Assembly: GCA_964188305.1 (NCBI GenBank)
Contig: OZ076885.1
Source: Podarcis bocagei
Taxonomy: Eukaryota
Direction: 5' to 3' (one strand)
DNA length: 64,000 bases
Below, in pieces: positions 1-50,728 of the stretch; position 1 is the stretch's first letter, and the number at the start of each line of letters is the position of its first letter. The translations under genes and the position numbers were made by a program. Below the pieces are notes generated by a model. That model saw nothing but the letters and a program-made list of their open reading frames with translations. It was not told the DNA's origin and did not search any database.

Positions 1-20
1 TTTCTGTGGCCTCTCATTAG

Positions 21-29
21 TGGACAAAG
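21..29 (+). CDS. SHANK2: SHANK2 9-nt microexon, (V)DK, phase 1-1
   Basis: ctctcattAG|TGGACAAAG|GTAAGC. Translates (G)TG GAC AAA G = VDK, matching the ...ELEEL-VDK-ASVRKKK-DKPEEI... segment of vertebrate SHANK2. Confidence 0.88.
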
Positions 30-4390: not shown

Positions 4391-4411
4391 CTTCAGTACG
4401 GAAGAAGAAGG
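4391..4411 (+). CDS. SHANK2: SHANK2 21-nt microexon, (A)SVRKKK, phase 1-1
   Basis: ccctttctattttcaAG|CTTCAGTACGGAAGAAGAAGG|GTAAGG. Encodes ASVRKKK(D), the known SHANK2 insert after the PDZ region. Confidence 0.93.
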
Positions 4412-13635: not shown

Positions 13636-16100
13636 ATTGAAATTATTAACATGAAAATGTTTCAGTTGAGTGAGAGATTTCTTAAGTTTCCTTTGCCTTA
13701 ATGAGAATTAGCAACACCCACAAAATCAAAAATATTAAATTATCATAAATTTAAAATGTCCAAAGAATGTCATGGATACCAGCAGCCACAGCAAAGTAGT
13801 TTTAAGTCCTATTGATTTTAGTGCTTGAATTGAGTACATGTTTAAAATTGTGGTCCTGTGCACAGCTCAAGTAAACTTAGTGGGATTAGCTTCTAAGGAA
13901 GCATGCATATGTTTCCTAGTTGAAATCAGTTGGACTTGAAATTCTTAACTTTGGTTGAAACACGCCACATTATTCCTTTATCACACGCCATATGCCCTCT
14001 TCTTTCCCCCCTGCCATGCCTTTCTCCCTTTCCCTCCTAAAGCTGTTGAGAGACAACTTAACGGTACTTCTTCTGCAGTGTACATGCTCGTGTTTATTGC
14101 TTTGCATCTGCAATGTCTGCCAAAAAGAGTGCTTTCAAAAGCCATCGATAGCTAAATATGCACAGAATTTACAAATGACTTTTTAATGTACATTTATGCT
14201 CTAATATTTAGGCAGGTACCTTTTGTAAGTTTTAGCTTCTTTCAAACACATATTAGATAACATGGAATAGTTTTCTTTTTAATTGCTCTGAATAAGTAGA
14301 AAGCACACTTGAATTGTACTTCGCTTGGGATTTTGCAATCTTACACTGACATGAGACATGTGGTCTAGAACTTGAATGCAGATTCATACAACACCTTTCA
14401 GAATATGCATTTTTGCACTACTGTATGGTAGAATTTATACGAAGCTTTTTCATTTTGTGAATGGCTCCCAGGCCATGGGATCGGCAACCCCTAAAGATTC
14501 AGGTTGTCAGTTGTGTGTCTTTTGGTGGGGAAAATGAACATGTGCTAGAACGCTTCACAAGTTCTACTTTTATATAGATCTCATAGCATGTGATGTATCG
14601 TCCTTTCATTAGTACATTGGGTGGGTATACTGGGAGGAAGAACAACACACATGAAAAATAGTGGTTATGGTTCATTTTCGAAGTTAATAATGTAGTTGAA
14701 GCCACAGTATGAAGGTGCAATGGATGTTGCACCCAGTTTGATGTAACCTATTGTGCATGGCACAGTTTCTATCTGTATCTGTCTTAGGTATTCAGAAACT
14801 TTCATCCTATCTAAAGCAGCTTGAACAGTAAGAAGAAGGGGCATGCTGCAAACATGGGCCTAAGTGCAGAGGAACAATTCACGGCTCCAAGAACTTTCTC
14901 AAGCGTGCTACTATGGCTGCTGCATTGCTAGCTGTATTTAATTGTACCCAAAGAACTTTCCAGTTATCTGGCAACAAAGAAGATCATACCTACTCCTGCA
15001 ATCCAGCTGTTCATATGGGGGGAAAGGAAAGAATATATAAGGAAAAGAAAGCAATCCAGTAGTGGAGATGAAAAATCTGGTGGGATCTCAAAAGGAAGGA
15101 CTCTTTGAGAGCAGCACTTCCCAGGGGAGGGATCAGCTGCCAATACAAGTGGCAGGTAAGACTCAACATGGCCATAAAGAGATAACTATTTTCAGTGAAT
15201 CAATTTAAATATGTTTCTTATAGCTGAAACCTCTGATTATTATAAGTACTGTAGCCTGTGCTCTTTCCATATACTTCCTAGAACTAAGTTGTCCTTGGTG
15301 TTTCTTCTGTAGCTTTTATATCACAAATAACTTGTAAATGGTATCCTACATTCACTGAGAAACTAGAAGCATGATAACCATGTTCAAGGAGCCAGCAGTA
15401 CGCCAGCACCATGATCCTACCCAAGCATCTATGGAGCTGGTGTAGTCCTGACTTCTGGCAACATTTGACAAACATCCTGTCCAAGGCAGCTTATACTTCA
15501 GGGCAGGGAGTAGGCAAACTACGAATAGTGAACACAAAATTATGAGGTGTATCATGCACATGGAGGTGTCAGAACAATACACTGAGGTGTATGACACAGA
15601 TGTACTAAATCACAGAAACGAAGGAGGCATCTGATCACACTGAGGAGAGGGACTGTGAGAAGTCTAACACTGCCTCTTTGCACACAACACTTAAAAAATT
15701 CAGCCAGTTGACAAATAAAATAATGTTATAGGGGAGATGCTGAAAAGAAGCCAAACACACTGTCTGGGGTTTTTTGTTTTTAATTCAGAAACAATAACAC
15801 TATGGAACGAAAAACTAAAAGAGCACCCGGTCCAAAAATTACCAGGCTCTTGGCACAGTCCTCTTGCTTTCCCTTTCTCCGTCTGTTTTCAAATACATCT
15901 TTATAGTTGAGAACTCTGGTAGGCATGCCAGAACAAAATGCAACCAGGTAATATTGATTAAACCATAGTATAGGAAGCCACACATCCACATACCCTATAA
16001 CTCACTGTATGTCTAGAAAGAAAATGATTGAGTTAGCAGCGGTTTAAAAATACATTGTTCGGTTAGGTAGATGTAGTATGTAAGGGTGTTGGGGTCTGAA

Positions 16101-17105: not shown

Positions 17106-20100
17106 ATAAATAATTGCTTCATTTTCTTTTCATTATTATTATTTCTACATCTCATTGAGCGTAACCCCAAGCTAGTGATTTGTGCCCCTGTAATGAAACC
17201 AAATCAGTAGATGAAAAGTATTTAGAAGATAAATGCAAAATATTTATTTTGTTTACATGTTGATCCTTGCAGTCCAGTTGTTGTATGCTCCTGGTGAAGA
17301 ACTAGGCAACAATGCAAGATCAAGGCACCTAATTCAAGAGAGAAGTTAACTTGCTTTTAATATTTCTAGTCACGTGGTGCAGAAGCGTAAGCCATTTGAT
17401 CATTCAGTCCTGCTGCTGAGCAGCACAGTTTATAGGCACACCAAATTTCCATTGTCTCCATATTACCAAATGCACTTCTTTCACACCACCAACATAGCAC
17501 TGGTGCCATCATCTTAACAACTTCCAAGTCCTGAATTTTATCAGGCCAACTTGCAGACAGCAAGAAAATGACCTTTCAAGCAGAGCCTGATGCATCAACC
17601 ATTATCCCAAGTTGCCACAGTTGCTCTGCATTGAATGAAAATCAGCTTAAGGTTCTCTGTGCCCCATAATAATATTAAATAAAGGCTGTAAATCCTAGTT
17701 ATTAGAGATGCTTGAACTCTTTGTTGTTAATGTTGCCTCTTGATTCAGCCCCTTCATTGTTAATGGCTAGTCTAACAACCCATCTTAACCTCTTTGAATG
17801 TATTCATGATTCATAAGTATTCGACAACAGTGTCAGAATTTAAGTCCATTGATTGTTTATAAACTGTTTACTCAGTTTGTTATTTGTGTGATTGGCCACA
17901 CATGCCAATCTCTCTGATTGGAAGGCTGAAGTTATTTGCTTAGGAAGACGTTGCAGTGAATAAAATGTTTCTGAGCAATAAGGATTTTTTTTTTCAAGTT
18001 AGGAAACTGGATTCACCAGTAAATGGCAAATGAACCATCTACATAAATAACAAACTATGCCAAAATATTATTTTATTTGTATATCAATGTTCACACATCA
18101 GCTGGGGGTGGGATAGGTTATATTTTTCAGATTATTTTATCAGGTCTATTGTTTTCCATTTGGTTCTGTTGTAAATGTTCAGACAAGGAGTTTTAAGATA
18201 TGAAAAATGCCTGGCTTCATATGATCAATGATATCCAATAATAATAATATCCCTTCTTTAGAATGGGATGGCCACCTTCTGCATTATAAGCGTCCACTCA
18301 GTTCTCTAGATTCCATTCCTGGAAGGGGAGTATATTTTGCTGTCCAATTGGACCTTCTCGCAACTAGTCAGAAGTTGTATTCAGCATGACCTAGGAAAAG
18401 CGGCTTCATAGTTATGGTGCATGCGTGCTGGATCATGATTTGGGCTGTTGCATTCAAAACCTGGAGATAGAATCATAGATTTGCACAGCTAACAACGTGA
18501 AAGGCTTCTCACACAACCTTTAAAAAAAATAATTTCCTTTTTATATAAAATGTTATTACTGATTGAAATGTAGCAGGGAGTAAGGCAGATAAAATTATTT
18601 CCTGGGCCACATCTTGCTCATGGGCCTCAGCTGGCAATCCCTGCTCTAGAGATTCAGTTAGAATTTTGAAACAGACATTTGCTCATGTGGTTAAAAACAT
18701 CCCTGTTTTATATGTGTACCCTAGCAGAGAATTCTGGAAAGTGGATTTTGTGGTCCTGCACTATCTATCTAAGGGATATAGGAATCACTGGTTACAGCTG
18801 TCGCTGGGCTGGTGGAGCAAAGGTGGGAATTAAAGTGCAAAAGCAGCAGGTATTACATTTAAATTGTCTCGTGAAGTCCCTTTTCAAAGTATCCATGCAG
18901 TGGAAGATCCAAGGCTTGCTTGCCGCTCTGTCTCCACATCCATTTTCATAAGGAACTCATGCATATTATATACAAACTGTTTCATTCTCACTTTCCATAA
19001 ACATGCAACTGGACAGTCTAAACAAACACAAACAGGTGTGAATACTTTGAATGTGAATACGTTAATTAATAGATGGAGAAATTATTAGCGCTCACAACGT
19101 AATTAATGTTGAGATTAAATATTCAGTTATATTGAATCATGAAATGTACAAGGCCCTTTAAATGAATCTATGGTTGGAGGGGTTCAGGATTTGGAGTGGT
19201 GAGAGAGACCATGGTTTTCTCTAGGAACCACCTCCAAAATCCCACTCCCACTAAAATAAGATGGATGATCTCAAAGGATAAGAAATAATAAGAAGCATTG
19301 TTACAATCAGACACATACATACATACACCCGTGTCCCTCTGGTGCAAATACACAACTCCAAATTAAGTTCATAAGAGCAGCATGTGGTGTGTGTCAATGA
19401 GCAGGAGTGACACCTAACCAAATACAAATTCATTTGGAGATTCTGCAAAGCAGGTGCAAATTACTTAGCACCAACCACACAGAGCAACCAGTTCACCAGG
19501 AATGATTAGTAGTAGTTACTCTTGTTTACTAGGTAGACTTAGTGAGAATCATGCTGTTCACACACAAATCTTGCTTAAGATTGGGAAATGTACTTTGAAT
19601 AAGTGATTATTATGATAATTTGAGAGGACATCTCAGATAAATATGAATGGGTAAATTGTCCCAGAGGCAGAAGGCTTACTTTATTTCCCCCCCCCCAACC
19701 TAGGACATTTTCTCATTCTTCATTAGCCTGCATAATATATATAAATGCATAAAGTAACTGCTTAGTTAGGAAGTGCATGCAATATATAATCATTTTAAAG
19801 TGTTTGGGGATACATTTTCTTAAGAGTAGATGTGAATTTAAATAACATACATGGACAAATGCCCTTATTTAATGCTTGACCTTTCTTTGTAAACTGCATT
19901 GTACACGTGTTATATAACTCTTTATAAAAGTACTCAGGCAAGGAGTCAGCAAGGCAAGTGCAAGGGAAATATTTATCTTCAGACAAACAAAAGGCATCCT
20001 GGTGAACAATGCCGTTGTGCATAATTGGTTTCAGTTTAATATTAACAAAAAGGAAATGAATGCATACAGAAGACCTAAGAGACATTGTTCACAGGATAAA

Positions 20101-20150
20101 TTTGATTGACTGCCACACAGATTTTGTGGCAATAATTCTGGAAGGAGTTT

Positions 20151-20323
20151 AGGGGTGAGATGAAACGCCGGACAAAAGAGAAGATAGCAAGCAGTGCTTC
20201 AAAAGTTGCCACACAAGCCAGTGGTGGAGCACATCTGACACCACAGGAAGCTCAGGTCGCTTGGAAAGTTGACTCCAAGTTCATCACAGAGATTTCTGAC
20301 TGTGACATCACTACAATGCATAG
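20151..20323 (+). pseudogene. Remnant exon of the Harbinger Myb/SANT-like DNA-binding protein gene (C-terminal part of the Myb-like domain)
   Basis: RGEMKRRTKEKIASSASKVATQASGGAHLTPQEAQVAWKVDSKFITEISDCD resembles the W.D.KRRTK.K...TGGG...LTP.E..V...VTGI..D pattern of Harbinger Myb-like/NAIF1/MSANTD proteins. Ends at donor AG|GTGAG; in-frame TAA at 20133 upstream. Confidence 0.7.
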
Positions 20324-20621
20324 GTGAGCTTTTTGCTAGGTTCACAGACATTTACTGTCACAATCACAATAAGGTGTATTGAAAGATGTTGTTTGGGATC
20401 CAGTACAGTTGTATGTGTTATGGGTGCAGCACCGTGTGCATTTTATGAAGTGCCACTTGCACTTTTCAGTCTCTAAATTTTAGTCTGCCCAATTATTTGC
20501 CCAAACACAAACACTCTGGTTTCCCAACTGGCTTCTTTCTGTGTGTTGTCCGATGTATGTAGATTCCTCCATCTGCCTGGCCTCAGATACAGTGGTTGTT
20601 GCTCCTCTATTTGATTGCCAG

Positions 20622-21478
20622 ATGTCACTGGGCAGCAAGATGGGGAGGTTCCTGGATCTTCTGGACAGCCCAGGCACCAGAGAGGAAGTTCACCATCCAC
20701 ACCTGCAGAAGAGCAAGAATCCTCAGTGCCAGCTTCTGATGAAGATTCACCAGCCAGAACTACAGAGAGTTGGCCATGGCCATTGTCATCATCTGAAACA
20801 CACAGCAACCTGGGGGAAGATTTTGAGGGATTTCCAACACCAGAGCGGACTCCGCAGTGTACAATGGACATACAATCTCCTGGGGATCAGTCTCTCAGTA
20901 GGACTCCCCAATATGAGAGTGACTCTCCTGTGGAGGGAAATGATGAAATGAACGAAGAGCACCATGGTGTTCAGCCTGTCCCTAGGGATCGGGGTTGGAG
21001 AGGGCAAACTCAGCTGACAGAGGGAGAGAGGTTATTAATGGAAACCAATAGTAGGATTGTACAGCTGCTGGAAAATATCAAGAGAGAGCATGCACAGTCC
21101 ATGGGTCTCATGTCACAGTCCATGGGCCGGATGGAGCTGCAGCTAGGCATTGTGGCTACATCCACAAGAGCCATCCATAACTACCTGTCTGAGATTTTAG
21201 CTTTCCTCAAACAACCAAGGACACAGGTCCTTGAAACACGTATCTCCCAAAGAGCCACACCTCATGTTGAGTTAACGAGTGCCTCAACGTGGACTGGTGA
21301 GGATGCAGTGGCAATGCCCACTGGATACTTACCAAGGGATGAAGGGATTAATGACTCTCAAGAAACACTGCAAGCCACACTGCCTCGTCGCAGTGGCCGA
21401 ATGCAGAGAGCCATAACAGAAAGGGCCTCGTTGCCCATGCCCATGCGCCAAGCAAAGGGGGGAGGGAAGAAAAAATAA
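20622..21478 (+). CDS. Intact 285-codon exon derived from the Harbinger Myb-like gene C-terminus (acidic S/P-rich region, coiled coil, basic tail GGGKKK*); candidate alternative last exon of SHANK2
   Basis: ORF-track 20615..21478. Opens just after TGA 20612-20614 at acceptor gctcctctatttgattgcCAG|AT GTC (phase 1). Heptad-rich segment LTEGERLLMETNSRIVQLLENIKREHAQSMGLMSQSMGRMELQLGIV. Confidence 0.6.
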
Positions 21479-21885
21479 TTTATCACACTAGTGATAGTAT
21501 TTTTAAGGGTTTTTTTTAATGTGCCTGTCCTTTTAATTCTTAGCCATAAGGCCATGAGTGGCAGAACTTGACCATTTTTACATTTGGCTAACATTGTATT
21601 CTGGCTGACTAGATTAGTCTTACATTTTGTAGTTTATATTTGCATTGTTAACAATGTGTGCTACTGGTATTTGAAGAACATTTGCTTCTGTTCTTTCACT
21701 TCAGCTTCATGAGAGCATTTTTTTACACTGTGCCAGACATTCATTGCTTTTCTTACAAATACAAATCATTTCTGGACACAGTTGTTTTTTGAGTTTTCTT
21801 TTTCCATTATCCCCCCTTCCCCCTTTCCCTCTGAGCAAGCATTCTGGAGTTTTTGGTAAGTATGTGGGTCTTGGCAATATTCGCC

Positions 21886-22850
21886 TCAGAAATTGTGTTC
21901 GATCAGTCTTTGCCTGGTGTTTCTGGCATGCTGGCCTGAGGTGTTGGGATTAGCCTGTAAGTGCCTTTTTTGATAATAATCTTATCCTCTGTGGGTCTGA
22001 CCAGATTAATCTCTTGCCTATTTTGTGGAAATTACATATCTTGGCTGGGTTGTGTAATAAGCAACATGCCAGGACTATATTGCAGCATTTGTGACTTGTA
22101 CAAAAACTGTGCCAGCAAACCTATCTAGGCACATGAACTACACTTTCAAAAGCTCCTTCCTTGTTGAACTGATGGTTTGGCGAGCAACATTGTTATCCCA
22201 TGGGGAAGTTTGGAGATTTAGAAACAGAGGAAAATAGCAATGCATTTATTATATGTGAATCACATAAAGAAATATAATAGGAGAAACTATCCCTAATACG
22301 ATCACAGATACTTACAGATCAAAGCAATCGCCTTCCTTTTAGCCAGACCTTCTCAGAATTTAAGAGTCATAACACGCTGTTGCGTTCTGTGCCACAATGT
22401 CTAAATAACAGCTTTGCATTGCAGACGATATGAAAATCTCTCCTCTTCCTTTAGGCCACCTCATTTACTGATGCTAAGAGTGGTCCTAGCACACTAGGCA
22501 GATAACTAATGCACATGGGTTGGAGAGCATTTTTATTACTGTTGGGACTGCCTCTGTGAGGGTTGGTTAAAAAGCGGGACACAAAAGCATCTAGATGAAT
22601 ATCAGGAATACAGAGTGGCTTCTGAGTGGTACTCGAGATCATCCTGTTTTCACCACCAAACTGGGTTGTGTGGTCGCCACCACTGTTACAGGCACAGTGT
22701 AGGCCCTGCTTCACTTTCCAGTTTCACTTTGGAGCTAAATTCCCTAAAGAGCATATTTATCCAGCCCATATCTAAATCCAAGTTTGTGGCTGTATCTAAA
22801 CAGGCTGTGGACCATGTGGGCCATCTCTTCCACCTACTCTTGTTTCAGAC
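21886..22850 (-). pseudogene. Decayed Harbinger (HARBI1-like) DDE transposase
   Basis: Minus-strand fragments: RYGLDKYAL (~22750-22775), LPSVLG, IVCNAKLLF/DIVAQ...CYDS*ILRRSG (~22345-22430), intron donor GTAAG (22315-22311), LLKV*FMCLDRFAG (~22110-22152), KCCNIVLACCLLHNPA (~22043-22090), ARNTRQRLIEHNF* (stop 21888-21886). Multiple stops, frameshifts and deletions. Confidence 0.85.
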
Positions 22851-23171
22851 GGAAGAAAACCTGAGAGCAAGAAGCATTTTGCTGCAGTACAAACCAGCCA
22901 TAATATGCTTCTTAGTGAAATATTTGCTTGTGGCTGCTTTTTGCTAAGTGACTGGGCTAATGGTGAGATGCAGCTAGTGTGGGCTAAACCCTCATGCAGG
23001 CACAACGTACGGTTCAGGTATCTGTCCTGAGGTGAGCTGCCATGGGTGTGCTGTCTTGACCATAAACTCTAAATGCACCCGGTCTGTCAGGGATGACCTT
23101 TCACACCTGCAAACCACTTGTGCCCCATCTGTGCCTGTTTTATTTCTTGTTTGTTTGTTAAACATAATATA

Positions 23172-23330
23172 CCGAATTTTTCCGTCTATAAGACACCTCC
23201 ATGTATAAGACTATTTTGGGGGACTCAGATTTAAGAAAATGGGGGGAGATGGCCCCATGTATAAGACGCCCCCTCATTTTTGAAATTTTTTTAAGGGAAA
23301 AAACCTAGTCTTATACACGGAAAAATATGG
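23172..23330. mobile_element. Tc1/mariner (pogo/Tigger-like) MITE with TA TSD
   Basis: TIRs CCGAATTTTTCCGTCTATAAGAC / GTCTTATACACGGAAAAATATGG, flanked by TA on both sides. Confidence 0.85.
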
Positions 23331-26300
23331 TATATATAGATGCCTTTATAAATAAATACATTTCAAATTGAAGCATGTAAGAATCATGATGCAAGAATAC
23401 ACATTCTTACAAAATTACATTAAAAAACAACAACCAAGGGGAAGTGTCACAAGCAAGTATGAAACGCAAGTCCAGTCCAATGGATTTTGTTAAGGTTCCA
23501 ATGTAGCTTTCAAAGTCCTAAACAAAAACAAGCTGCAGAGCTCTTTGAAAATTAGCCTTTTATTAATATGTTTGAAAAGGGAAATACATGGAGTTCCACA
23601 AACATCCTGAGATCAGCCTAGATCTACAATATAATGAAGATGTGTTTATTTGCATTATGTCACTCTAAAAGTGTGATGGAATTGGGGAGGGGGGGTATTC
23701 AGAATTTGACAAATATACTACAGTTCAAACATAACCATTGTTGGAAAGTCCAGATTTCCTCTCTAAATTTAATACATTTAATTCATTGGGTTTTACTGCA
23801 TCCCAACTTCACTATGTGATTAAAAAAAAAATCAGCACAAAATTCATTCTTTGCAGTAATATACAAAGCCCCCTTCCCATTCCAACTTGTTTCAGCTATC
23901 TGTGATTAGAAAGGGTTGTAATACCTGCCATTTTGAGTGGAAGAAGCTGTAGGGCAAGGAGAAATGAGCTGACAATAATAAGATCAACAAAAGATAGAGT
24001 TTCCCACTAACCTAATGTGTGGTGGCAATATCAGATTTTGTTAGCGAATACCTGCAAACTGATATTGTAGTCAGATCTAGTGCTTGGATCAGACTTCCAA
24101 TACTGTCTTGCAAAATAATGGAGGTATGCATGGTTTTTATCATTTTCAAAGTGAATATACCCATGCTTTTTTCTTGTATCTGTCAAAGCCTATTCATTAT
24201 TTCCCTGTAGTTCTCATTGTCTGGCTAGAAATATGGCTACGTGTGTCTTTTCAGTTACAAAAGTTATGAGTTTTTATGTGGAATATTACATTACTTGCAG
24301 ACATTGAGTAACAAATACTTCCCATCTTCAAAATCTTTCACTGTTGATCACAAAAGGTTTGTGGCATCATTTACAGGACTAGAGAGGCATAACACAAAAT
24401 CTTCCCTCTTGGTGGTGGATATACCAGCAAACCCAAATGTCAAAGATGAAACCTGTAAGGTTTATGTTTTACTGCAAATTGGAAAGGTTTAGTCATAGTT
24501 TGAAAGACAGAATTCAGATTTCTGCTAAATTGAGTATAAATCTATCACATTTGAATCTTTTAAAAAGCAGGCAAAAAAAAAAAAAGAATACTGAAAGATA
24601 TTGATATTTACAAATAATCTATTGCATTGTCCAGTTCCATGATGTTGGCAGTAGATCTTGAGCCTTCTCAGTGACTTAAGAATCTGCTTTTCCATGACAA
24701 TTTTCTTCACAGGTAGAGAAGTTAACTGTGATGCCTATAAACACCATTGCCCTGATCCAGCTATCCCTTGTGGGCACAAGGGCTCTGATCTCACCCAGCC
24801 ACAGGATCTTCTCCATTCACTTCAGTGGTCGAGGCATCTCTGGTATCACATGCATAGAGATATGCACATAGATCTTTTCCATCCACTGCTGTGATTTGAG
24901 AAACCCACACATGCAGGGGCTCCTTGTGCACATTGCAGCACACACGGGACTCTGGTTCAGGAAGCGTCTCTGCATTTAACTAGATGTGCTACATTAAAAG
25001 CCATTTTCCTTTTCCCATATACCATTCTAAACCACATTATTAAGAGATGAATATGCTCTACATATCTAATTACAATCTCTAATTTCAACACTCTGCATGG
25101 GTGGAATTGTCTGTAGAAAATTATTGAGGTGACTGTATTGAGTTGGTAACTAATGGGCTAGTTTCTCTTTCTTCCTAAAGCAGTTTGCAATGCAGGTATT
25201 TTGTATTTAATTCTAGAAAAATCAGTTGGGAAGTATGATGCCTTTCAGACTTCAGTTGTCGGACATGATGAAAAAAAGAAATTGGTGGGCAATGGAGTCT
25301 CTTCCAGTTGTTACATAACTTTTTATGTATGCATATATGCTGAGTATCCAGGGCCCTGTGGTTAGGATGAATATTTTTCTAACTTTGCTTTGATAATCTA
25401 AATGTTAAAAAAACAGCACTGCATATATATAATCTGACTGCATTCTCTGAACATTGATACTGAAGGTGTGGCAAAGAAAGAATATAGGACTATTTTTTAT
25501 AGTATAAGGTTGGCTCTTATTCCAAGTGTGGAGGATGAATTGATGTGTGATCTTAGATCAGTAAAATGACTCAGTTTCAACATAAATACAAAGGGATGAT
25601 ACCCATTGTATAATGCTATAATCCAGTTGTTGCCTAACTCTAGATTTGAACATTCCTCTTGCATCTTAAAAGGAAATCACTTGTATCGATTGCTTCTATT
25701 TTGGTTTGTGTTTGTAATTTGTCGCATTTTGCATTGTGCCGATTGGATCCAAATTTTCCTGTGCTACAAAGGGTAGAGATAAATTTTGTGTGGTTGGCCT
25801 CTATAGCACACGTAAAACTGAGGGCTGGTTCTCTTCATAACCTTGTCCGTGACGGGCTGCTTTTATTTATCCAGCTCAGATTAGTTTTCCTACCTTTTGT
25901 CCATAGTGAAGTGGTCCTACTATGACTTTGAGATCACAGTTTGATGGCCATCACTCAAACATACTCTTTGAACATTTGTGGCAAACAGTAACACCATCTG
26001 AGTTTGCGGTCAAAATGTTTCATGACTACTTCCTCATAGGCAAATGCAGGAAAATAGTACTCCAGAGTTTAGAAAGTGGTTTGCTACTAACAACGTGGCC
26101 ATGAGAATTAGCCCTGAGATATTAATTGCCAGGCTTATAGCAAAGTTTCTAATGAAGATTTGAAACTTGACTCATTGGACCTAAGTATGATTCATTTAAC
26201 ATTTAGAAGTCCATAGAAAATTAAGTATTTGCATATTTAAGAGACTTTAAAAAGTGATGTTATAACAGTGCCAAATCGTTTTGTCTAATAGCCTGACATC

Positions 26301-26742
26301 AGGAATAGGTTACAAAGTAATAGCATAAAGAGCACTTAAAAATACCTATTATTGTCTAAAATTTCATTAGCATTCTAGTGACTACTGTGTGGAATAGTGC
26401 TCTGCAGGTGTAAAATTTCTAAAGGTTTTCTTTCCATTTCTATATAGATATTTTCCCTTCACATTTTGAAGGTTTGAAGAAGAGGATTGTTTTTCGAGTC
26501 ACACTAAGTAAACATTAAATGCATGCAGGCTTAAAACTAAAGCATGCATGTTACGCAGCAACAATAAAAGTGCTCGGCTTGCACGACTTACGATGCTGAA
26601 GCATTGCCTTGTTAAATTGCCAAAATCCCCTTTTTATTTGCATCTTTAAAAAAAGTTAAACTCTTAATTTCACATTGCATTATTTAGATTTTCAGTCTTT
26701 GGACAAATTAGATTTATTTTAGCAAATATTTCTGTGTTACAG

Positions 26743-26873
26743 ATAAAGTTGATGAAATAGTACCAGTTTCCAAGCCATCAAGAATTCCAGACAATGCAGC
26801 CGTGGACTCAAGAGTGGCAACAATTAAACAACGACCTTCCAGCAGATGCTTTCCCTCGGCTACAGATATGAAT
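26743..26873 (+). CDS. SHANK2: SHANK2 exon (D)KVDEIVPVSKPSRIPDNAAVDSRVATIKQRPSSRCFPSATDMN, 131 nt, phase 1-0
   Basis: gttacAG acceptor, GTGAGT donor. RVATIKQRPSSRCFP is characteristic of SHANK2. Confidence 0.95.
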
Positions 26874-31531: not shown

Positions 31532-31643
31532 TCTATGTATGAGAGACAAGGGATTGCTGTGATGCCACCAACAGTCCCTGGGAGTTCCCAAGGCCCGTTT
31601 CTGGGTGTACCACGAGGTACCGTGAGAAGACAAAAATCAATAG
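31532..31643 (+). CDS. SHANK2: SHANK2 exon SMYERQGIAVMPPTVPGSSQGPFLGVPRGTVRRQKSI(G), 112 nt, phase 0-1
   Basis: Long polypyrimidine tract plus TAG acceptor, GTAAAA donor. Homologous to SHANK2 SVYERQGIAVMTPTVPGSP...RRQKSI. Confidence 0.95.
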
Positions 31644-31772
31644 GTAAAATGAAACTTTCTACAAGTGACGTTTCATTATTTTCAACAATTGTTTACAGTG
31701 TTTGTTTCAAATGCATTTGTTCATGGGTTGATTTTGAGTCTTGATCAAATAGCCATTGCGTGAGAACATACT

Positions 31773-32700: not shown

Positions 32701-34375
32701 AGGCCAGTGTCTGTCAATAACATTGGCTGAATATTGCAACTGGAATTTGTGCTCTTTGAAATATACAATTTCTTAAGTAATTCATATTTTTTTTAGCTTG
32801 TTTATTTCAAATATTTATTTACTGCTTAATATCAGAATTTCTTAGCATACAAAATGCATTTATAAATTAATAAGTAACAAAGTAACCAACAGCAGACAAT
32901 CCCTATAAAGTATGGTAAAATCCAAACCAAATTTAATACGCATTTAAATTTTATGTTTATTGAATCAAAAGCATCTACTTTTGCACATTTGAAAATGTTT
33001 TAGCATTCTGATTTCCATGTGTAGAATTTTGTATATATCACAATGCCAAATTCGTACTACAAAAAGAACAATAATTTTTAAAAAGACTATATTGGTAAAA
33101 GTTACTCAGAAGTTAGTTTTAAATGCAATCATTCTTCTTTGCTTTATAATTGTGTTTTATAATCTGTGTATATGTGATAAGATGGTATTTTTGTTTAAAA
33201 TAATTACAGAAAGCTTTAGTAAAATATATATTAATTGGTCCATTTTGCTGTAGAAGTATTTGGTTGTACAATGAGGAAGTTAAACAGAGTCAACATATGT
33301 TTTATGGAAATGTATTTTTCTGCAAAATGATGTTGTTTTAGTCATATTGGAAACTTAGTCAAAGGTCTTATTCCCCACAATTTCAATTGCTATTCTTGCT
33401 GTAATAGCAATGGCAAGCAGAGACCGAAAAGATACATTTAACACCAAACTTTAATTAGAGCAGGTTGCAATATGGGAGTTAAAGCTGAGAGGCAACGTTT
33501 TTCTTGTCCTTTCTTCTCCTTTATGTTTGAAGGGATATTCTCTTCCCTGGTGAAATAATGAAGTTATTCTTTGCAACTCTCTACATAAAAATAGTTACGG
33601 GAAATACAGTGAAAGAAATGTATATTATCAACTATTGCAAGGAATAGCAATCAGCCCATAGCTTAGATAGACCCTTTTGCTGCTGTTGTTTCATCCTGAA
33701 CACAAACCAGCAAGCCAGCTATATTAATTATTACTTCAGAGACTTTCTGTGTAAGGAGAGCATCTCTTTGCTCTGTCTGTACCAGGAAGTACCACAAGTA
33801 GCTTGTGAAGCCATTGCCTCATGCTGTGACCTGCCCTGGTTAGTGCTTCACGTCTAGCTTTCCAGCATGAAATCTAGCACCTCATACAACAGGTAGCAAT
33901 CTCACTCCAAAGTTACATATGTTTGTTTGGAAGGTTGTTTCACAATGCCTCTCAATCCACTCTCTTTACCCATGTAGAAACATTGTTTTAGCATGTTTCA
34001 TGCATGGCCACCTATTCACAAATGCCAACATGCATACATTTATTTATTTTTAAGCTTTCCTTTCCTTTCTTCTTCCAGTCTCTCACAGCTTTTGGCTGAT
34101 AACTTCCTTTTATGCACAGTTCATAAAAAACATTAGGGATGCACAATTCTCTGTGCACATATGTAAGAAAATGCTGGAAGATCAGCATAGGGACACTGAG
34201 GCAAGCCAAAATGTAAACTGAAGATCTAGTTGCAGACATATTCTAAAACCAAACCATGCATAGTAATATATAATACAGTATTTTCTGTACCTGGTTTACT
34301 ATGTCTTTGGTGACAATGGATGATAATTAAAATTCAAGAGCAATTTAAAAATTGTAGCTTGTGATTTTTTTAAAG

Positions 34376-36791
34376 GGATAACAGAGGAAGAACGGCAATT
34401 TTTGGCTCCTCCCATGCTAAAATTTACCAGAAGTCTATCCATGCCAGACACCTCTGAAGATATCCCTCCTCCTCCACAGTCTTTACCTCCATCACCACCA
34501 CCTCCATCTCCTTCTCTTTACAACTCCCCCAAATCTCCAGTGTCTAGAATATATGGGACAATTAAGCCTGCATTTAATCAGAATTCAGGTGCAAAGTTAG
34601 CTATTTCAGGTAGATCTGAAAATATGGGAACGGTGATAAGGGACAAAGGGATATATTACCGGAGAGAGATGGACCGTTATTCTCTAGATTCTGAGGACTT
34701 ATATAGCAGAAATGCCTCAACTCAGGCAAGCTTCAGAAACAAGAGAGGTCAGATGCCGGAGAACCCATACTCTGAAGTTGGAAAAATAGCAAGCAAAGCA
34801 GTGTATGTCCCAGCCAAGCCAGCAAGACGGAAGGGAATGCTAGTGAAACAATCTAATGTTGAGGATAGTCCAGAAAAAACCTGCTCTATTCCAATTCCAA
34901 CTATCATTGTTAAAGAGCCATCTACCAGCAGTAGTGGGAAAAGTAGTCAAGGAAGCAGCATGGAAATTGACCCACAGTCTTCAGAGCAACCAGGACAGCT
35001 CAGACCTGAAGATAACTTGACTGTCAGTAGTCCATTTGCAGCAGCCATTGCAGGGGCAGTGAGGGATAGGGAGAAAAGATTAGAAGCCAGGCGTAACTCT
35101 CCAGCTTTCCTTTCCACAGATTTGGGAGATGAGGATGTTGGGCTATCGCCTCCAATGCCACGCTTGAGACAGTCTAAGTTTAGTGATGAGGGAATGTTTG
35201 GTAATGAAGACAACTTTAGGCAACTTGTATCACCATCTCCTATCCCAGCACCTAGAGAGCCTGAAAATATTTTTAATAGCAGTGAATCAAGTAATCAAAG
35301 TGATGCAAGGACACCAAACCCTCCAACCCCAACATCCATGGGTTCAGAAAATAATGTGTTGGCAACTCAGAATGCTGGTATGTCCAGTTTGGATAACTAT
35401 GTTCATCCACTCACAGGGAAATTACTGGATCCAAATTCACCTTTAGCCCTTGCCCTTTCTGCCAGAGATAGAGCCATGAAGGAACAAACCCAGCAAATTC
35501 CAGGGAAAGGAGAATCTGGCAAAGCAGACCTTAATAAACCCCTTTATATAGATACAAAGATGAGGTCCAACATCGAAACTACATTTCCAGTGACAGCTAC
35601 AATTGCTAGGCAAAATACGCGTGGTCCACTAAGGCGGCAGGAGACGGAGAACAAATATGAGACAGATACGGGGAAAGAGAGGAGGCCTGAAGAAAAGAAG
35701 AACATGCTGATCAATATTGTGGATACCTCACAGCAGAAGTCCGCTGGTTTGCTCATGGTTCATACGGTAGATACAGCGCAGTCCAATGAGACCCCTGATG
35801 AAAAGGAAGAGGAAAGTGCTGAGATAGATGTGGATACTGAAAAGCCTCCACCAGAGGCGCAGGAAAGTACAGAAACAGCAGAAAGTGGACCAGATGAAGC
35901 TGACATGCCTGAGCTACCTGCATCTCCCTGCAAAACTATTGTAGCAGTTGGCTCCGTTGATGATCCAATCATTTTACCGTTCCGTATCCCTCCACCCCCT
36001 TTAGCATCTGTTGACCTTGATGAAGATTTCATCTTTACTGAGCCATTACCACCGCCTTTAGAATTTGCTAACAGTTTTGATATCCCTGATGACCATTCTG
36101 TCCCAGGCTCTGCACTAACAGACTTGCTCAAACACAGAAAAAATGGAACTCCACCTGCTTCATTCAATCCTACTCAACCCTCAAATTCAATAGACAGTAA
36201 GAAACCAGTGGGTCTTTCAAACTGTTTGCCTGCCTCATTTTTACCACCGCCTGAAAATTTTGATAATGTCACTGACTCTGGGATTGAAGAGGTGGACAGT
36301 CGAAGCAGTAGTGATCATCACCTAGAGACAACCAGCACTATCTCAACTGTGTCCAGCATCTCTACCTTATCCTCTGAAGGTGGTGAGAACTTGGATACTT
36401 GTACAGTCTATGCAGATGGGCAAACATTTCTGGTGGACAAACCCCCAGTACCTCCTAAGCCAAAAATGAAGCCCATAATCAACAAAAGCAATGCACTTTA
36501 CAAGGATGCGCTAATTGAAGAAACTGTAGATAGTTTTGTTATTCCTCCACCTGCCCCACCCCCACCTCCTATCAGCGCACAGCCCGGTATGGCTAAAGTT
36601 GTACAGCAAAGGACCTCTAAGCTATGGGGTGATGTAACGGAGGTTAAAAGCCCAGTTCTCTCAGGCCCAAAGGCTAATGTCATTAGTGAATTGAACTCAA
36701 TACTGCAGCAAATGAACAGAGAGAAATCATCAAAGCCAGGGGAAGGATTGGAGTCACCTCCAGGAATAAAAACAGCAAGTCTTAGTACAAG
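34376..36791 (+). CDS. SHANK2: SHANK2 large proline-rich exon (G)ITEEERQFLAPPMLKFTRSLS...TASLSTR, 2416 nt, phase 1-2
   Basis: ORF-track 34402..36795 (its 'M' is an internal TTG Leu). tttttttaAAG acceptor, GTAAAT donor. Contains the Homer-binding PPLEF (36052-36066) and cortactin-SH3-binding KPPVPPKP (36439-36462) motifs. Confidence 0.98.
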
Positions 36792-38339
36792 GTAAATGCA
36801 ACTAAATTATTTTTTAAGTCTATAGTTTCCGTAAGTTTAAATTGCCTTTGCTTTCATTAATAATGTCTTAAATACCATTTAATCTTATGTTTAAAATGCA
36901 TGGTATTAATGCTCCAGTGTTAATTTTTGACCCTCTTAAAAATCTACAAAATACGTTAATTGCTATTATCATTTTTCACCTTTGCCCTTCTTTGTTTATG
37001 ATATTAACACGTATTGAAACATGCTATCTTTTACTATGCTGCTAGTTAAGAATCAATTTCACCTCTCCCTTCTAGAATCCCTGGTTATGTGTTTTATGGT
37101 TTACCCCTAACTTCTCCACATTTAATGAAAAAGTTTCAAAGTGGCTCTAAGTGACAGCTGACTGGTTATAGTTCTGATTTAATTTCAAGTTGATATTGCT
37201 TCAGCAGTAGCTATCTTATTTAGAATGTGTTGAGTAGTTTTGTGTGTTTTATTTTGCATGATACATATGTTTAGTTTACAATGCAAAGGGCCACATGTGG
37301 CGCTGCATGTATTTGCCAAGGTTTTTCGTCTTCCTGCTGCAATCCATTACAACCTCCAACAAAGCACTCCTGAGAATCCAGTTGGAGGTGGAAGGAAAGA
37401 GAGAAATCAGCAGTCCCACATGCAAATGTAGAAGTGCTTTCTGCTCACACCTTTGGATCCCAGCCAGAATCTCTCTATGCTTTTTTAGTAAATGAAATAA
37501 AAATCTGTCCTTTATTTGATAACAAATATTCTAATGCAACTTTAGAAAAAACCAAAAGTGACACATTTAATCTCAAAAATATTTATTTTATTGCATGGGC
37601 TTCAGTGCATGCAAGAAAGGAGAATGCACTAATGGACCATATTCTGGTTTCATTTTTTAAAATCAAGTTTCCTGCTGGATCATACCAGTTGCTCATTTGG
37701 TCTAGCATCTTGTTCTCACACTGTGCACATTCAGTTACTCCAGTAAAACGATCAAGGTACATTAATGATTTGTTGTTTGAGCTGTTTGGTTTTAATTGTT
37801 GGAAGAAGAGTAGTCACAAAGCCTGTCCTTTAGTCTTTTCTAGGGTGGCCAGAGACAAAGGATACAAGGGCTTTTGCACCTCTCTCAATTGTGGAATTTT
37901 GTTGTGTGCATCTTATCATGCAGGGGTGAAAGCAGCTGCACTTTCAAAAAAATCATTTTCTACACAGCTATTAAAAATGTGAGAGGTCTGTCATCCTCTC
38001 CTCTTCATCAGAGCATACAACTGCCATGGTGAATAATACATTACTTTTCTAAAACTTTTGTAAAAAACATGTTCTCCATGGTGGTAGTATATGGTGGCAG
38101 GGTCAGCTTTGGCATCCCATCTTCAACCACCCTGCCTTACAGCCAGTACCACTGAAAGATTGCATTTGTCAGACATATTTTTAAAGTCAATATTGTGAAA
38201 TTTATTGAGCCTTTGGGTGGATTTGTTGCACTTGCTATGATAGGTTCTAGGACTTTCAACTGAAGGTGGCAACCCATGGTAGCGGAACAGTAGAGTGATG
38301 TATGAAACCCCAAACTCTGAATGTACCATTTTTTACCTG

Positions 38340-49542: not shown

Positions 49543-50154
49543 CGTAGGACTACCCCTGATGAGCCAGGTCACTGTACTAAGAGCATTCAGCTAGTTCAAA
49601 ACACAATGGCCTGCCTCCTGAAGGTGAAGTTCCCAAGCATCAGAACTGGGTTCTTCTAGGATTCTGGCCTGTGCTTAGCAAGACAGGTTTCAGCATGTAA
49701 CTTACCTTGGGAACTGCCTCCTCTTCTGTACCCTGTACCCTTCTGTCTTCTGATCTCTTAGATGTAATTTCCTTAGTGCATCATCTGTGCAACGAATTAG
49801 AACAATGACACAGAGAAGCATCCTTGGTTGTTTTGTCCAGTTTTGGAACTCTCTTGTGAGATTCACCACACTTAAATGCCTTCTGCTACCATAATGCTCT
49901 TTGGGACAATGATTCAGTGGCTAGAGTTAATTTTTAGCAGCATATTTGAGATTGTCTTTGACTTTTAAAATATTTGTAAAGCTTGCTCATAGTTTTCTGC
50001 CACTATTGTTTTCATAAAGTCGTATGGTATCTCTTTGGCATTTATATATATCTTTAATACGTAATCGTGTCATAAGTTAGCAATGAGCTGATTTGTATTT
50101 TTAATACGTGGAGAGTCTGAATATTTCCTGTTCATTTTTATTTGTTTATTTCAG

Positions 50155-50728
50155 GGGCACAGAAGTCATGAGCACTGTCTCAGGTACTCGAAGTTCAACC
50201 ATCACTTTTACTGTCCGGCCTGGAACTAGCCAGCCAATCACACTGCAGAGCAGATCCCCAGACTATGATAGTAGGACACCAGGAGCAAGACATGCTCCAA
50301 GCCCAGTGGTTTCACCAACAGAAATAAGTAAGGACATCATGCCAGCTCCTCTGACTGCTGCTGCTCCAGTTGCATCTCCTTCTCCAACACTTTCTGATGT
50401 TTTTAGCCTACCCAGCCAGCCTCCTTCGGGGGACCTCTTCGCTTTGAACACAGGGCGCAGCAGGTCTCCTTCTCCCTCAATCTTGCAACAGCCAATATCA
50501 AATAAGCCTTTTACAACTAAGCCTGTCCACCTGTGGACCAAGCCAGATGTGGCAGATTGGTTGGAGAGTTTAAACTTAGGTGAACATAAAGAGACCTTTA
50601 TGGATAATGAAATAGATGGCACTCACTTACCAAACCTTCAGAAGGAAGACTTGATAGACCTTGGAGTGACTAGAGTTGGTCACAGAATGAACATAGAAAG
50701 AGCCTTGAAACAGCTACTGGACAGATAA
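50155..50728 (+). CDS. SHANK2: SHANK2 terminal coding exon with C-terminal SAM domain (...WTKPDVADWLESLNLGEH...RMNIERALKQLLDR*)
   Basis: tttgtttatttCAG acceptor. Phase 2 matches the preceding exon (AG+G=Arg). The SAM sequence is typical of SHANK2. TAA at 50726-50728. Confidence 0.98.

Follow-up and report, generated by a model that had tools for sequence, protein, structure and literature searches.

The question raised by this locus is to which gene, if any, an intact open reading frame (ORF) within an intron of SHANK2 belongs. SHANK2 is a central scaffold of excitatory synapses whose isoforms are known almost solely from work on mammals, and the frame was noticed in a stretch of 64,000 nucleotides (nts) from Podarcis bocagei (GenBank assembly GCA_964188305.1, contig OZ076885.1), here called the window. 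The initial annotation regarded the frame as an exon derived from a Harbinger transposon and spliced in frame to SHANK2. Our analysis argues for the splicing and not for the transposon. With a probability of about 70%, positions 20622-21478 (the tail exon, encoding the tail) are the coding part of an ancient alternative SHANK2 exon between the ASVRKKK microexon and the DKVDEIV exon, by which the SHANK2 frame is read into the tail, and the same exon can also be reached from a further upstream exon, named exon X. The coordinates of all features are listed in Table 1.

Position and phase were read directly from the window. A stop-free frame of 287 codons spans 20615-21478, opening after an in-frame TGA at 20612-20614 and closing with the TAA at 21476-21478, and an acceptor reading ...ctctatttgattgccag/AT (a slash marks the splice site) lies at 20621/20622. 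The 857-nt stop-free frame, the TGA before it and the phase-1 entry described in the initial annotation are all borne out by the sequence. The window begins within a SHANK2 microexon ending at 29, and a second microexon ends at 4411; joining either donor to 20622 completes an Asp codon (G+AT), after which the frame continues as VTGQQDGE.... Both microexons indeed end in phase 1 with a G, as had been claimed, giving the junction ASVRKKK-D-VTG, and the same junction is present in a crocodile gene model. In total, the phase of the tail acceptor fits three upstream phase-1 donors (after 29, 4411 and 15155, the last being that of exon X). Since the tail exon and the next constitutive SHANK2 exon both start with AT in phase 1, their acceptors would compete for the same donors.

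The frame and its acceptor are shared by other sauropsids. Across six sauropsid genomes there is no difference in the 43 nts immediately 5' of the acceptor, in the upstream TGA or in the TAA; each of the six has an open ORF, whose indels among these species are of 3 or 6 nts only. Judged from these alignments, the open frame and its acceptor are far beyond chance.

Comparisons between species further reveal selection on the encoded protein. The ratio of nonsynonymous to synonymous divergence (dN/dS, or omega; NG86 method) was 0.065 against Varanus and 0.11-0.20 in the remaining comparisons. Among the six species, the proportions of variable columns at codon positions 1, 2 and 3 are 0.10, 0.09 and 0.41, respectively, and neither flank displays such periodicity. 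In an alignment of 29 sauropsid sequences, 98 consecutive residues (122-219) are invariant. Moreover, the 80 codons preceding the first Met (MDIQ...) have omega values of 0.08-0.17 (one-sided Fisher p from 5e-3 to 2e-12), and this constraint also holds between crocodile and turtle, both of which lack an ATG in exon X. Because these pre-Met codons are constrained, they are translated, and translation must enter the tail exon from an upstream exon. The purifying selection proposed in the initial annotation is thus confirmed by dN/dS, third-position excess, in-frame indels and pre-Met omega, and by these comparative measures the tail exon is protein-coding and under strong purifying selection. 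The synonymous divergence (dS) between squamates and archosaurs or turtles is low (0.34-0.48), and this low value implies that the ORF also carries constraint at the nucleotide level besides that at the protein level.

A protein search with the tail returned five clusters only, all of them sauropsid and 88-100% identical across the aligned part. Their members are models called "uncharacterized protein LOC..." from birds (ostrich to passerines), a crocodile and sea turtles, together with models labelled as SHANK2 from chicken (A0A8V0ZZV9), turkey (A0A803YIF5) and Komodo dragon (KAF7252051). At the genome level, the ORF occurs once per locus, within SHANK2 and on its coding strand, in Crocodylus porosus, Varanus komodoensis, Struthio camelus and two sea turtles. 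A syntenic ORF with omega well below 1, which the initial annotation had named as the way to check its proposal, is therefore present as a single copy in SHANK2 across five sauropsids. No tail was found in non-sauropsid proteins, either by the protein search (157-499 amino acids (aa) range) or with a junction-spanning query made from the chicken fusion (252-801 aa range), or in an exhaustive phmmer search of cluster representatives. Weak matches to the latter query in Logan were rejected, being single SHANK2 exons read into introns. The homologous SHANK2 intron of Myotis brandtii (only about 5.5 kb, of which about 2 kb is assembly gap) gave no match to the conserved block or to the tail, so absence from mammals is only suggested, by one bat locus with part of the intron gapped.

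Pairwise dS values are ordered as in the species tree: 0.15 between turtle and crocodile, 0.24 between turtle and ostrich, and 0.34-0.48 between squamates and the rest. This order fits vertical descent from the sauropsid ancestor, which lived about 280 million years ago, and does not fit a young element. On this sequence evidence, the tail exon appears to be ancient, vertically inherited and sauropsid-wide.

The tail consists of three parts. Residues 1-120 are acidic, rich in Ser/Thr/Pro and disordered (net charge -19), the invariant core lies within residues 121-212, and residues 213-285 are mildly basic, ending in KGGGKKK. From the 29-sequence alignment, AlphaFold2 predicted a long amphipathic helix of 63 residues (134-196) with a predicted local distance difference test score (pLDDT) of 86-96, and a short helix at 201-208; the remaining tail is of low confidence, and the mean pLDDT over the chain is 55. 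In the best heptad register, 72% of the a/d positions are hydrophobic, compared to 33% elsewhere. The coiled coil suspected in the initial annotation was recovered here as helix 134-196 with its heptad pattern; the model fits a coiled coil or another helix-helix interface, of which the coiled coil is probably the correct description. A PDB profile search with the tail gave no match, and a feature search of the ESM Atlas gave only unnamed chordate clusters with scores below 0.9.

Existing gene models reach the tail exon by three routes. In the chicken and turkey models, ...SKSMTSELEEL is joined straight to DVTG, which produces a PDZ-tail fusion; in the crocodile model XP_019407090, ASVRKKK is joined straight to DVTG, and the Komodo dragon model KAF7252051 also shows a PDZ-tail fusion. 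In addition, the LOC models of more than 15 birds begin with MVGFQKEGFLKSSTSQGRDQLPVQVA followed by DVTG and describe a separate protein of 312-313 aa.

Under the preferred reading, choice of the acceptor at 20621/20622 over that at 26742/26743 would let the SHANK2 frame continue for 285 codons and then stop. The product would keep everything through the PDZ domain, lose the proline-rich Homer/cortactin-binding region and the SAM domain, and gain an acidic disordered linker, the 63-residue amphipathic helix (probably coiled-coil) and a basic end. In squamates and birds, entry from exon X would yield a stand-alone product about 310 aa long. The fusion is probable, and we infer that it is made in Podarcis bocagei itself. 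Its helix may oligomerise or supply an interface for another partner, and the isoform would then act as a variant scaffold free of SAM and Homer binding.

Table 1. Features of the SHANK2 tail locus in the window (a slash marks a splice site)
Feature	Position	Strand	Description	Evidence or remark
SHANK2 microexon, 3' end (..GLSLVDK)	1..29	+	donor AAAG/gtaagc, phase 1, last base G	87% identity to crocodile and ostrich
SHANK2 microexon ASVRKKK	4391..4411	+	donor G/gtaagg, phase 1, last base G	
Exon X	15068..15155	+	conserved, donor GCAG/gtaag, phase 1	first coding exon of bird LOC models
Upstream intronic block	20149..20621	+	20-92% invariant per 50-nt bin, 74% overall	six species
ATG-led ORF (MKRRTKEKIASSAS...)	20160..20323	+	54 codons, ends at conserved ATAG/GTGAGC donor	within upstream block
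Tail exon	20622..21478	+	285 codons + TAA, phase-1 entry	frame, conservation, selection, helix prediction
Downstream non-coding flank	21479..21944	+	15% variable columns, no periodicity	either 3' untranslated region (3'UTR) or regulatory sequence of the intron
Consensus 5' splice site motif G/GTAAGTAT	21855..21863 (cut 21855/21856)	+	377 nt 3' of stop	
Next constitutive SHANK2 exon (DKVDEIVPVSK..., DKVDEIVPVSKPSR...)	26743..26873	+	starts AT, phase 1	

Downstream of the exons in Table 1, later SHANK2 exons are located at 31532-31650, about 34362-36792 and 50153-50725. The intron sequence at 26385-26742 (about 360 nts, + strand), just 5' of the next constitutive exon, is 86-89% identical to its counterparts in crocodile, ostrich and turtle. 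This conserved stretch suggests a possible regulated choice between the acceptor at 26742/26743 and that at 20621.

Several observations weigh against a SHANK2 exon that simply ends the transcript with a new protein tail. All ten Logan contigs carrying the ORF are collinear with the genome (unspliced), with no junction among them; the ends of these contigs fall at A-runs and are hence uninformative on splicing or polyadenylation. The fusion models are products of automatic annotation, the Komodo dragon model holds doubtful extra exons, and in birds the ORF is mostly annotated as a gene of its own. The flanks of the ORF are as conserved as the ORF itself, so part of the constraint must be non-coding. 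The conserved 5' splice site motif at 21855/21856 indicates that the exon may be internal. Finally, the stretch 21479-21944 lacks both AATAAA and ATTAAA in five of the six species; the exception, Varanus, has an AATAAA that overlaps its stop codon. The description of the frame as an alternative last exon of SHANK2 consequently stands in part: it is in frame and fusion models exist, while "last" is unproven, given the downstream 5' splice site and the lack of a conserved poly(A) signal.

The conserved block as a whole covers about 20149-21944 and is largely invariant among the six species (74-85% of ungapped columns; most 50-nt bins at 0.56-0.94). Variable columns make up 26% of the upstream flank, 20% of the ORF (41% at its third positions) and 15% of the 466 nts after the stop. 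The motif G/GTAAGTAT is kept in every sauropsid locus that covers its position, and the 90 nts after it are about 90% invariant. Further downstream, an AATAAA occurs near the aligned positions 22252-22267 in Varanus, turtle and crocodile and near 22525 in birds, and the window has none before 23351. One option is that the tail exon is the last one and carries a 3'UTR of about 0.8 kb. Another is an internal exon of 1234 nts, with a stop that either exposes the mRNA to nonsense-mediated decay or results in an intron within the 3'UTR. Thirdly, the motif could serve as a U1 site in the control of intronic polyadenylation. All three options are compatible with a coding role. A search of 19900-22600 against Rfam detected no known RNA.

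The rival that survives best is a mainly regulatory block. According to this explanation, 20622-21855 would be a long internal "poison" exon, or the block would be a U1-controlled switch for intronic polyadenylation, whose inclusion truncates or destabilises the SHANK2 mRNA, the protein tail being secondary. It accounts for flanks that match or exceed the ORF in conservation, for a perfect splice site motif past the stop in all species, for the lack of a conserved AATAAA in the conserved block and for the low dS between squamates and archosaurs or turtles. A pure poison exon, however, needs no 285-codon frame held at omega of about 0.1 with in-frame indels only, and an internal exon of 1.2 kb would be unusually long; moreover, regulatory and coding roles are not exclusive. 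We regard a mainly regulatory function as rather unlikely.

Somewhat less probable still, and unlikely in our assessment, is that the ORF is solely part of a separate gene nested within this intron of SHANK2, one driven by a promoter of its own and starting with an exon at about 15068-15155; the SHANK2 fusions would then be annotation artefacts. The initial annotation had offered an intronic gene starting at an internal ATG (20864) as its second option; stand-alone models do exist in birds, but they start in exon X and not at 20864. The N-terminal peptide of the bird LOC models, which number more than 15 named entries of 312-313 aa starting MVGFQKEG..., maps to 15077-15155 of the window, and the phase-1 donor of exon X is conserved, with an ATG in the exon in both birds and squamates. 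In the window and in Varanus this ATG is at 15068, in birds it is three codons downstream, and none is found in the open stretch of turtle or crocodile. In those two lineages the pre-Met 80 codons are nevertheless under purifying selection, and with exon X lacking an ATG there, a SHANK2 fusion is the simplest source of their translation. In exon X itself, variation shows no periodicity by codon position (8, 6 and 9 of 26 sites vary at the three positions), the phase of the tail fits both SHANK2 microexons, and independent Ensembl and NCBI models link SHANK2 exons to the tail. Under the preferred reading of an alternative SHANK2 exon, a stand-alone protein of about 310 aa made from an internal promoter in birds and squamates is plausible as an additional product. 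Upstream of exon X, a conserved block at 14689-15067 (+), with 66-81% identity to its counterparts in turtles, ostrich and Varanus, may be an internal promoter; the motif TATATAAG at about 15034-15041 is limited to squamates.

The transposon origin was examined in the exon, in its flanks and in protein databases. Pfam found no Myb/SANT/MADF or DDE_Tnp_4 domain in the 285-aa tail, giving only a sub-threshold unrelated match. The flanks were searched as two sets. The first comprised 119 stop-free pieces of at least 35 aa from the six frames of 17500-25500, which matched 14 unrelated Pfam families by one member each (best E 0.004, which is at chance level because 119 pieces were searched) and included no Myb, MADF, DDE_Tnp_4 or Plant_tran. 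The second comprised 35 pieces of 20-34 aa from the areas claimed for the Myb exon (+ strand, 18500-20620) and the transposase (- strand, 21480-23100), and produced zero matches at E<=10. An exhaustive phmmer search against 1.84 billion cluster representatives recovered only the tail's own cluster and a junk repeat (E=4e-4), the latter being rejected as a relative since it is a tandem-repeat artefact. No convincing terminal inverted repeats flank the block, although their survival is not expected in an insertion so old.

The neighbouring pieces assigned to the same element do not hold up either. The supposed decayed transposase (21886-22850) showed no DDE_Tnp_4 in the Pfam search of stop-free pieces; its first 60-100 nts are about 90% invariant in the six species, the interval has no codon periodicity, and conservation is low past about 22430. 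As for the Myb exon, no Myb family appeared among the flanking pieces. Hence an intact ORF beside seemingly decayed ORFs need not be derived from a transposon; here, the neighbours are ultraconserved non-coding DNA. A separate 28-nt inverted repeat (23167-23335; 89% complementary, arms 113 nts apart) lies in a poorly conserved part of the intron and can be described as a small hairpin or an element resembling a miniature inverted-repeat transposable element.

The ATG-led ORF at 20160-20323 in the upstream block was also considered. It is open to its donor in squamates and crocodile only, being broken in turtle, ostrich and chicken by indels of 2, 4 or 5 nts and by stops, with the ATG lost in ostrich and chicken. 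Splicing it to 20622 as part of the frame was rejected, as it ends in phase 2 and would meet a stop after about 38 codons. It may be what is left of an earlier first exon, or else an upstream ORF with a regulatory role.

Domestication from a Harbinger/PIF transposon, with the exon as what remains of its Myb-like partner gene, is very improbable: a lineage-restricted orphan coding sequence in an intron, a short ATG-led ORF upstream whose frame is broken in turtle, ostrich and chicken, and the general appearance of domesticated transposon genes are circumstantial or generic points in its favour, and against them stand the lack of any Pfam trace in the exon or the 154 flank pieces, the empty PDB profile search, the phmmer result, the lack of convincing inverted repeats and a claimed transposase area that opens in invariant, aperiodic non-coding DNA. 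A transposon origin in general is unsupported, though not disproved, as an insertion predating the sauropsid ancestor could have lost all recognisable marks. We describe the tail as an orphan sequence, and the origin of the module is perhaps a mobile element that is now unrecognisable.

Returning to the tail as an alternative SHANK2 exon, part of this is already public, namely the tail sequence, which is annotated as a protein without a name and as one of the Ensembl isoforms of SHANK2. In the full-text literature we found nothing on the tail exon, on its LOC identifiers or on SHANK2 linked to a Harbinger or transposase fusion. The novelty lies in recognising that SHANK2 has an orphan tail module, ultraconserved and sauropsid-wide, along with the regulatory block of this module. 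We propose, tentatively and at slightly less than an even chance, that sauropsids make a SHANK2 isoform that mammals lack, in which the SAM domain and the Homer/cortactin region are replaced by an orphan coiled-coil module, and that this module is also made on its own from an internal promoter. If true, a core postsynaptic scaffold would have been rewired in a way specific to this lineage. A tail that is near-invariant across the major sauropsid lineages and has no relative among 1.84 billion representatives implies an unstudied function under strong selection. Candidate roles include a PDZ-plus-coiled-coil scaffold, a stand-alone partner protein, and a splicing or polyadenylation switch that sets SHANK2 dosage.

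Comparison with known systems helps to place the tail exon. Like the vertebrate genes HARBI1 and NAIF1, which derive from Harbinger elements, it is a single-copy, vertically inherited, strongly conserved coding sequence of lineage-restricted origin. In HARBI1, however, a DDE_Tnp_4 domain can still be recognised, and in NAIF1 a domain of the Myb/trihelix type, whereas no DDE_Tnp_4 or Myb domain is detectable in the tail exon and its flanks, and the tail has no relative in the searched databases. The ultraconserved poison exons of splicing-factor genes resemble it in being stop-containing alternative exons within non-coding sequence that has stayed near-invariant for hundreds of millions of years, and the SHANK2 block shares with them a conserved 5' splice site motif downstream; unlike in those exons, the long frame before the stop is here under protein-level selection. 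The LOC models of birds, turtles and crocodile, as well as A0A8V0ZZV9 and A0A803YIF5, are orthologues of the tail exon with 88-96% amino-acid identity, although they are automatic predictions with no name, domain or publication. The closest parallel within SHANK2 is the mammalian short isoform AF141901. Canonical SHANK2 contains a proline-rich region with Homer, dynamin and cortactin sites as well as a SAM domain, and AF141901 departs from it past the PDZ domain, where an alternative 3' end in exon 22b arises by read-through of the exon-22 donor and adds only a few residues (Leblond et al. 2012, PMC3276563). In the window, the SHANK2 exon at 31532-31657 (+) ends in ...RRQKSI, with a few open codons beyond its donor (GKMKL...), and this read-through stretch is at the position where AF141901 arises. 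The two isoforms are alike in having a post-PDZ alternative 3' end that leaves SHANK2 without its proline-rich region and SAM domain. They differ in that the sauropsid form would use a separate exon, further upstream in the gene, that encodes an ultraconserved orphan tail of 285 aa found in sauropsids only.
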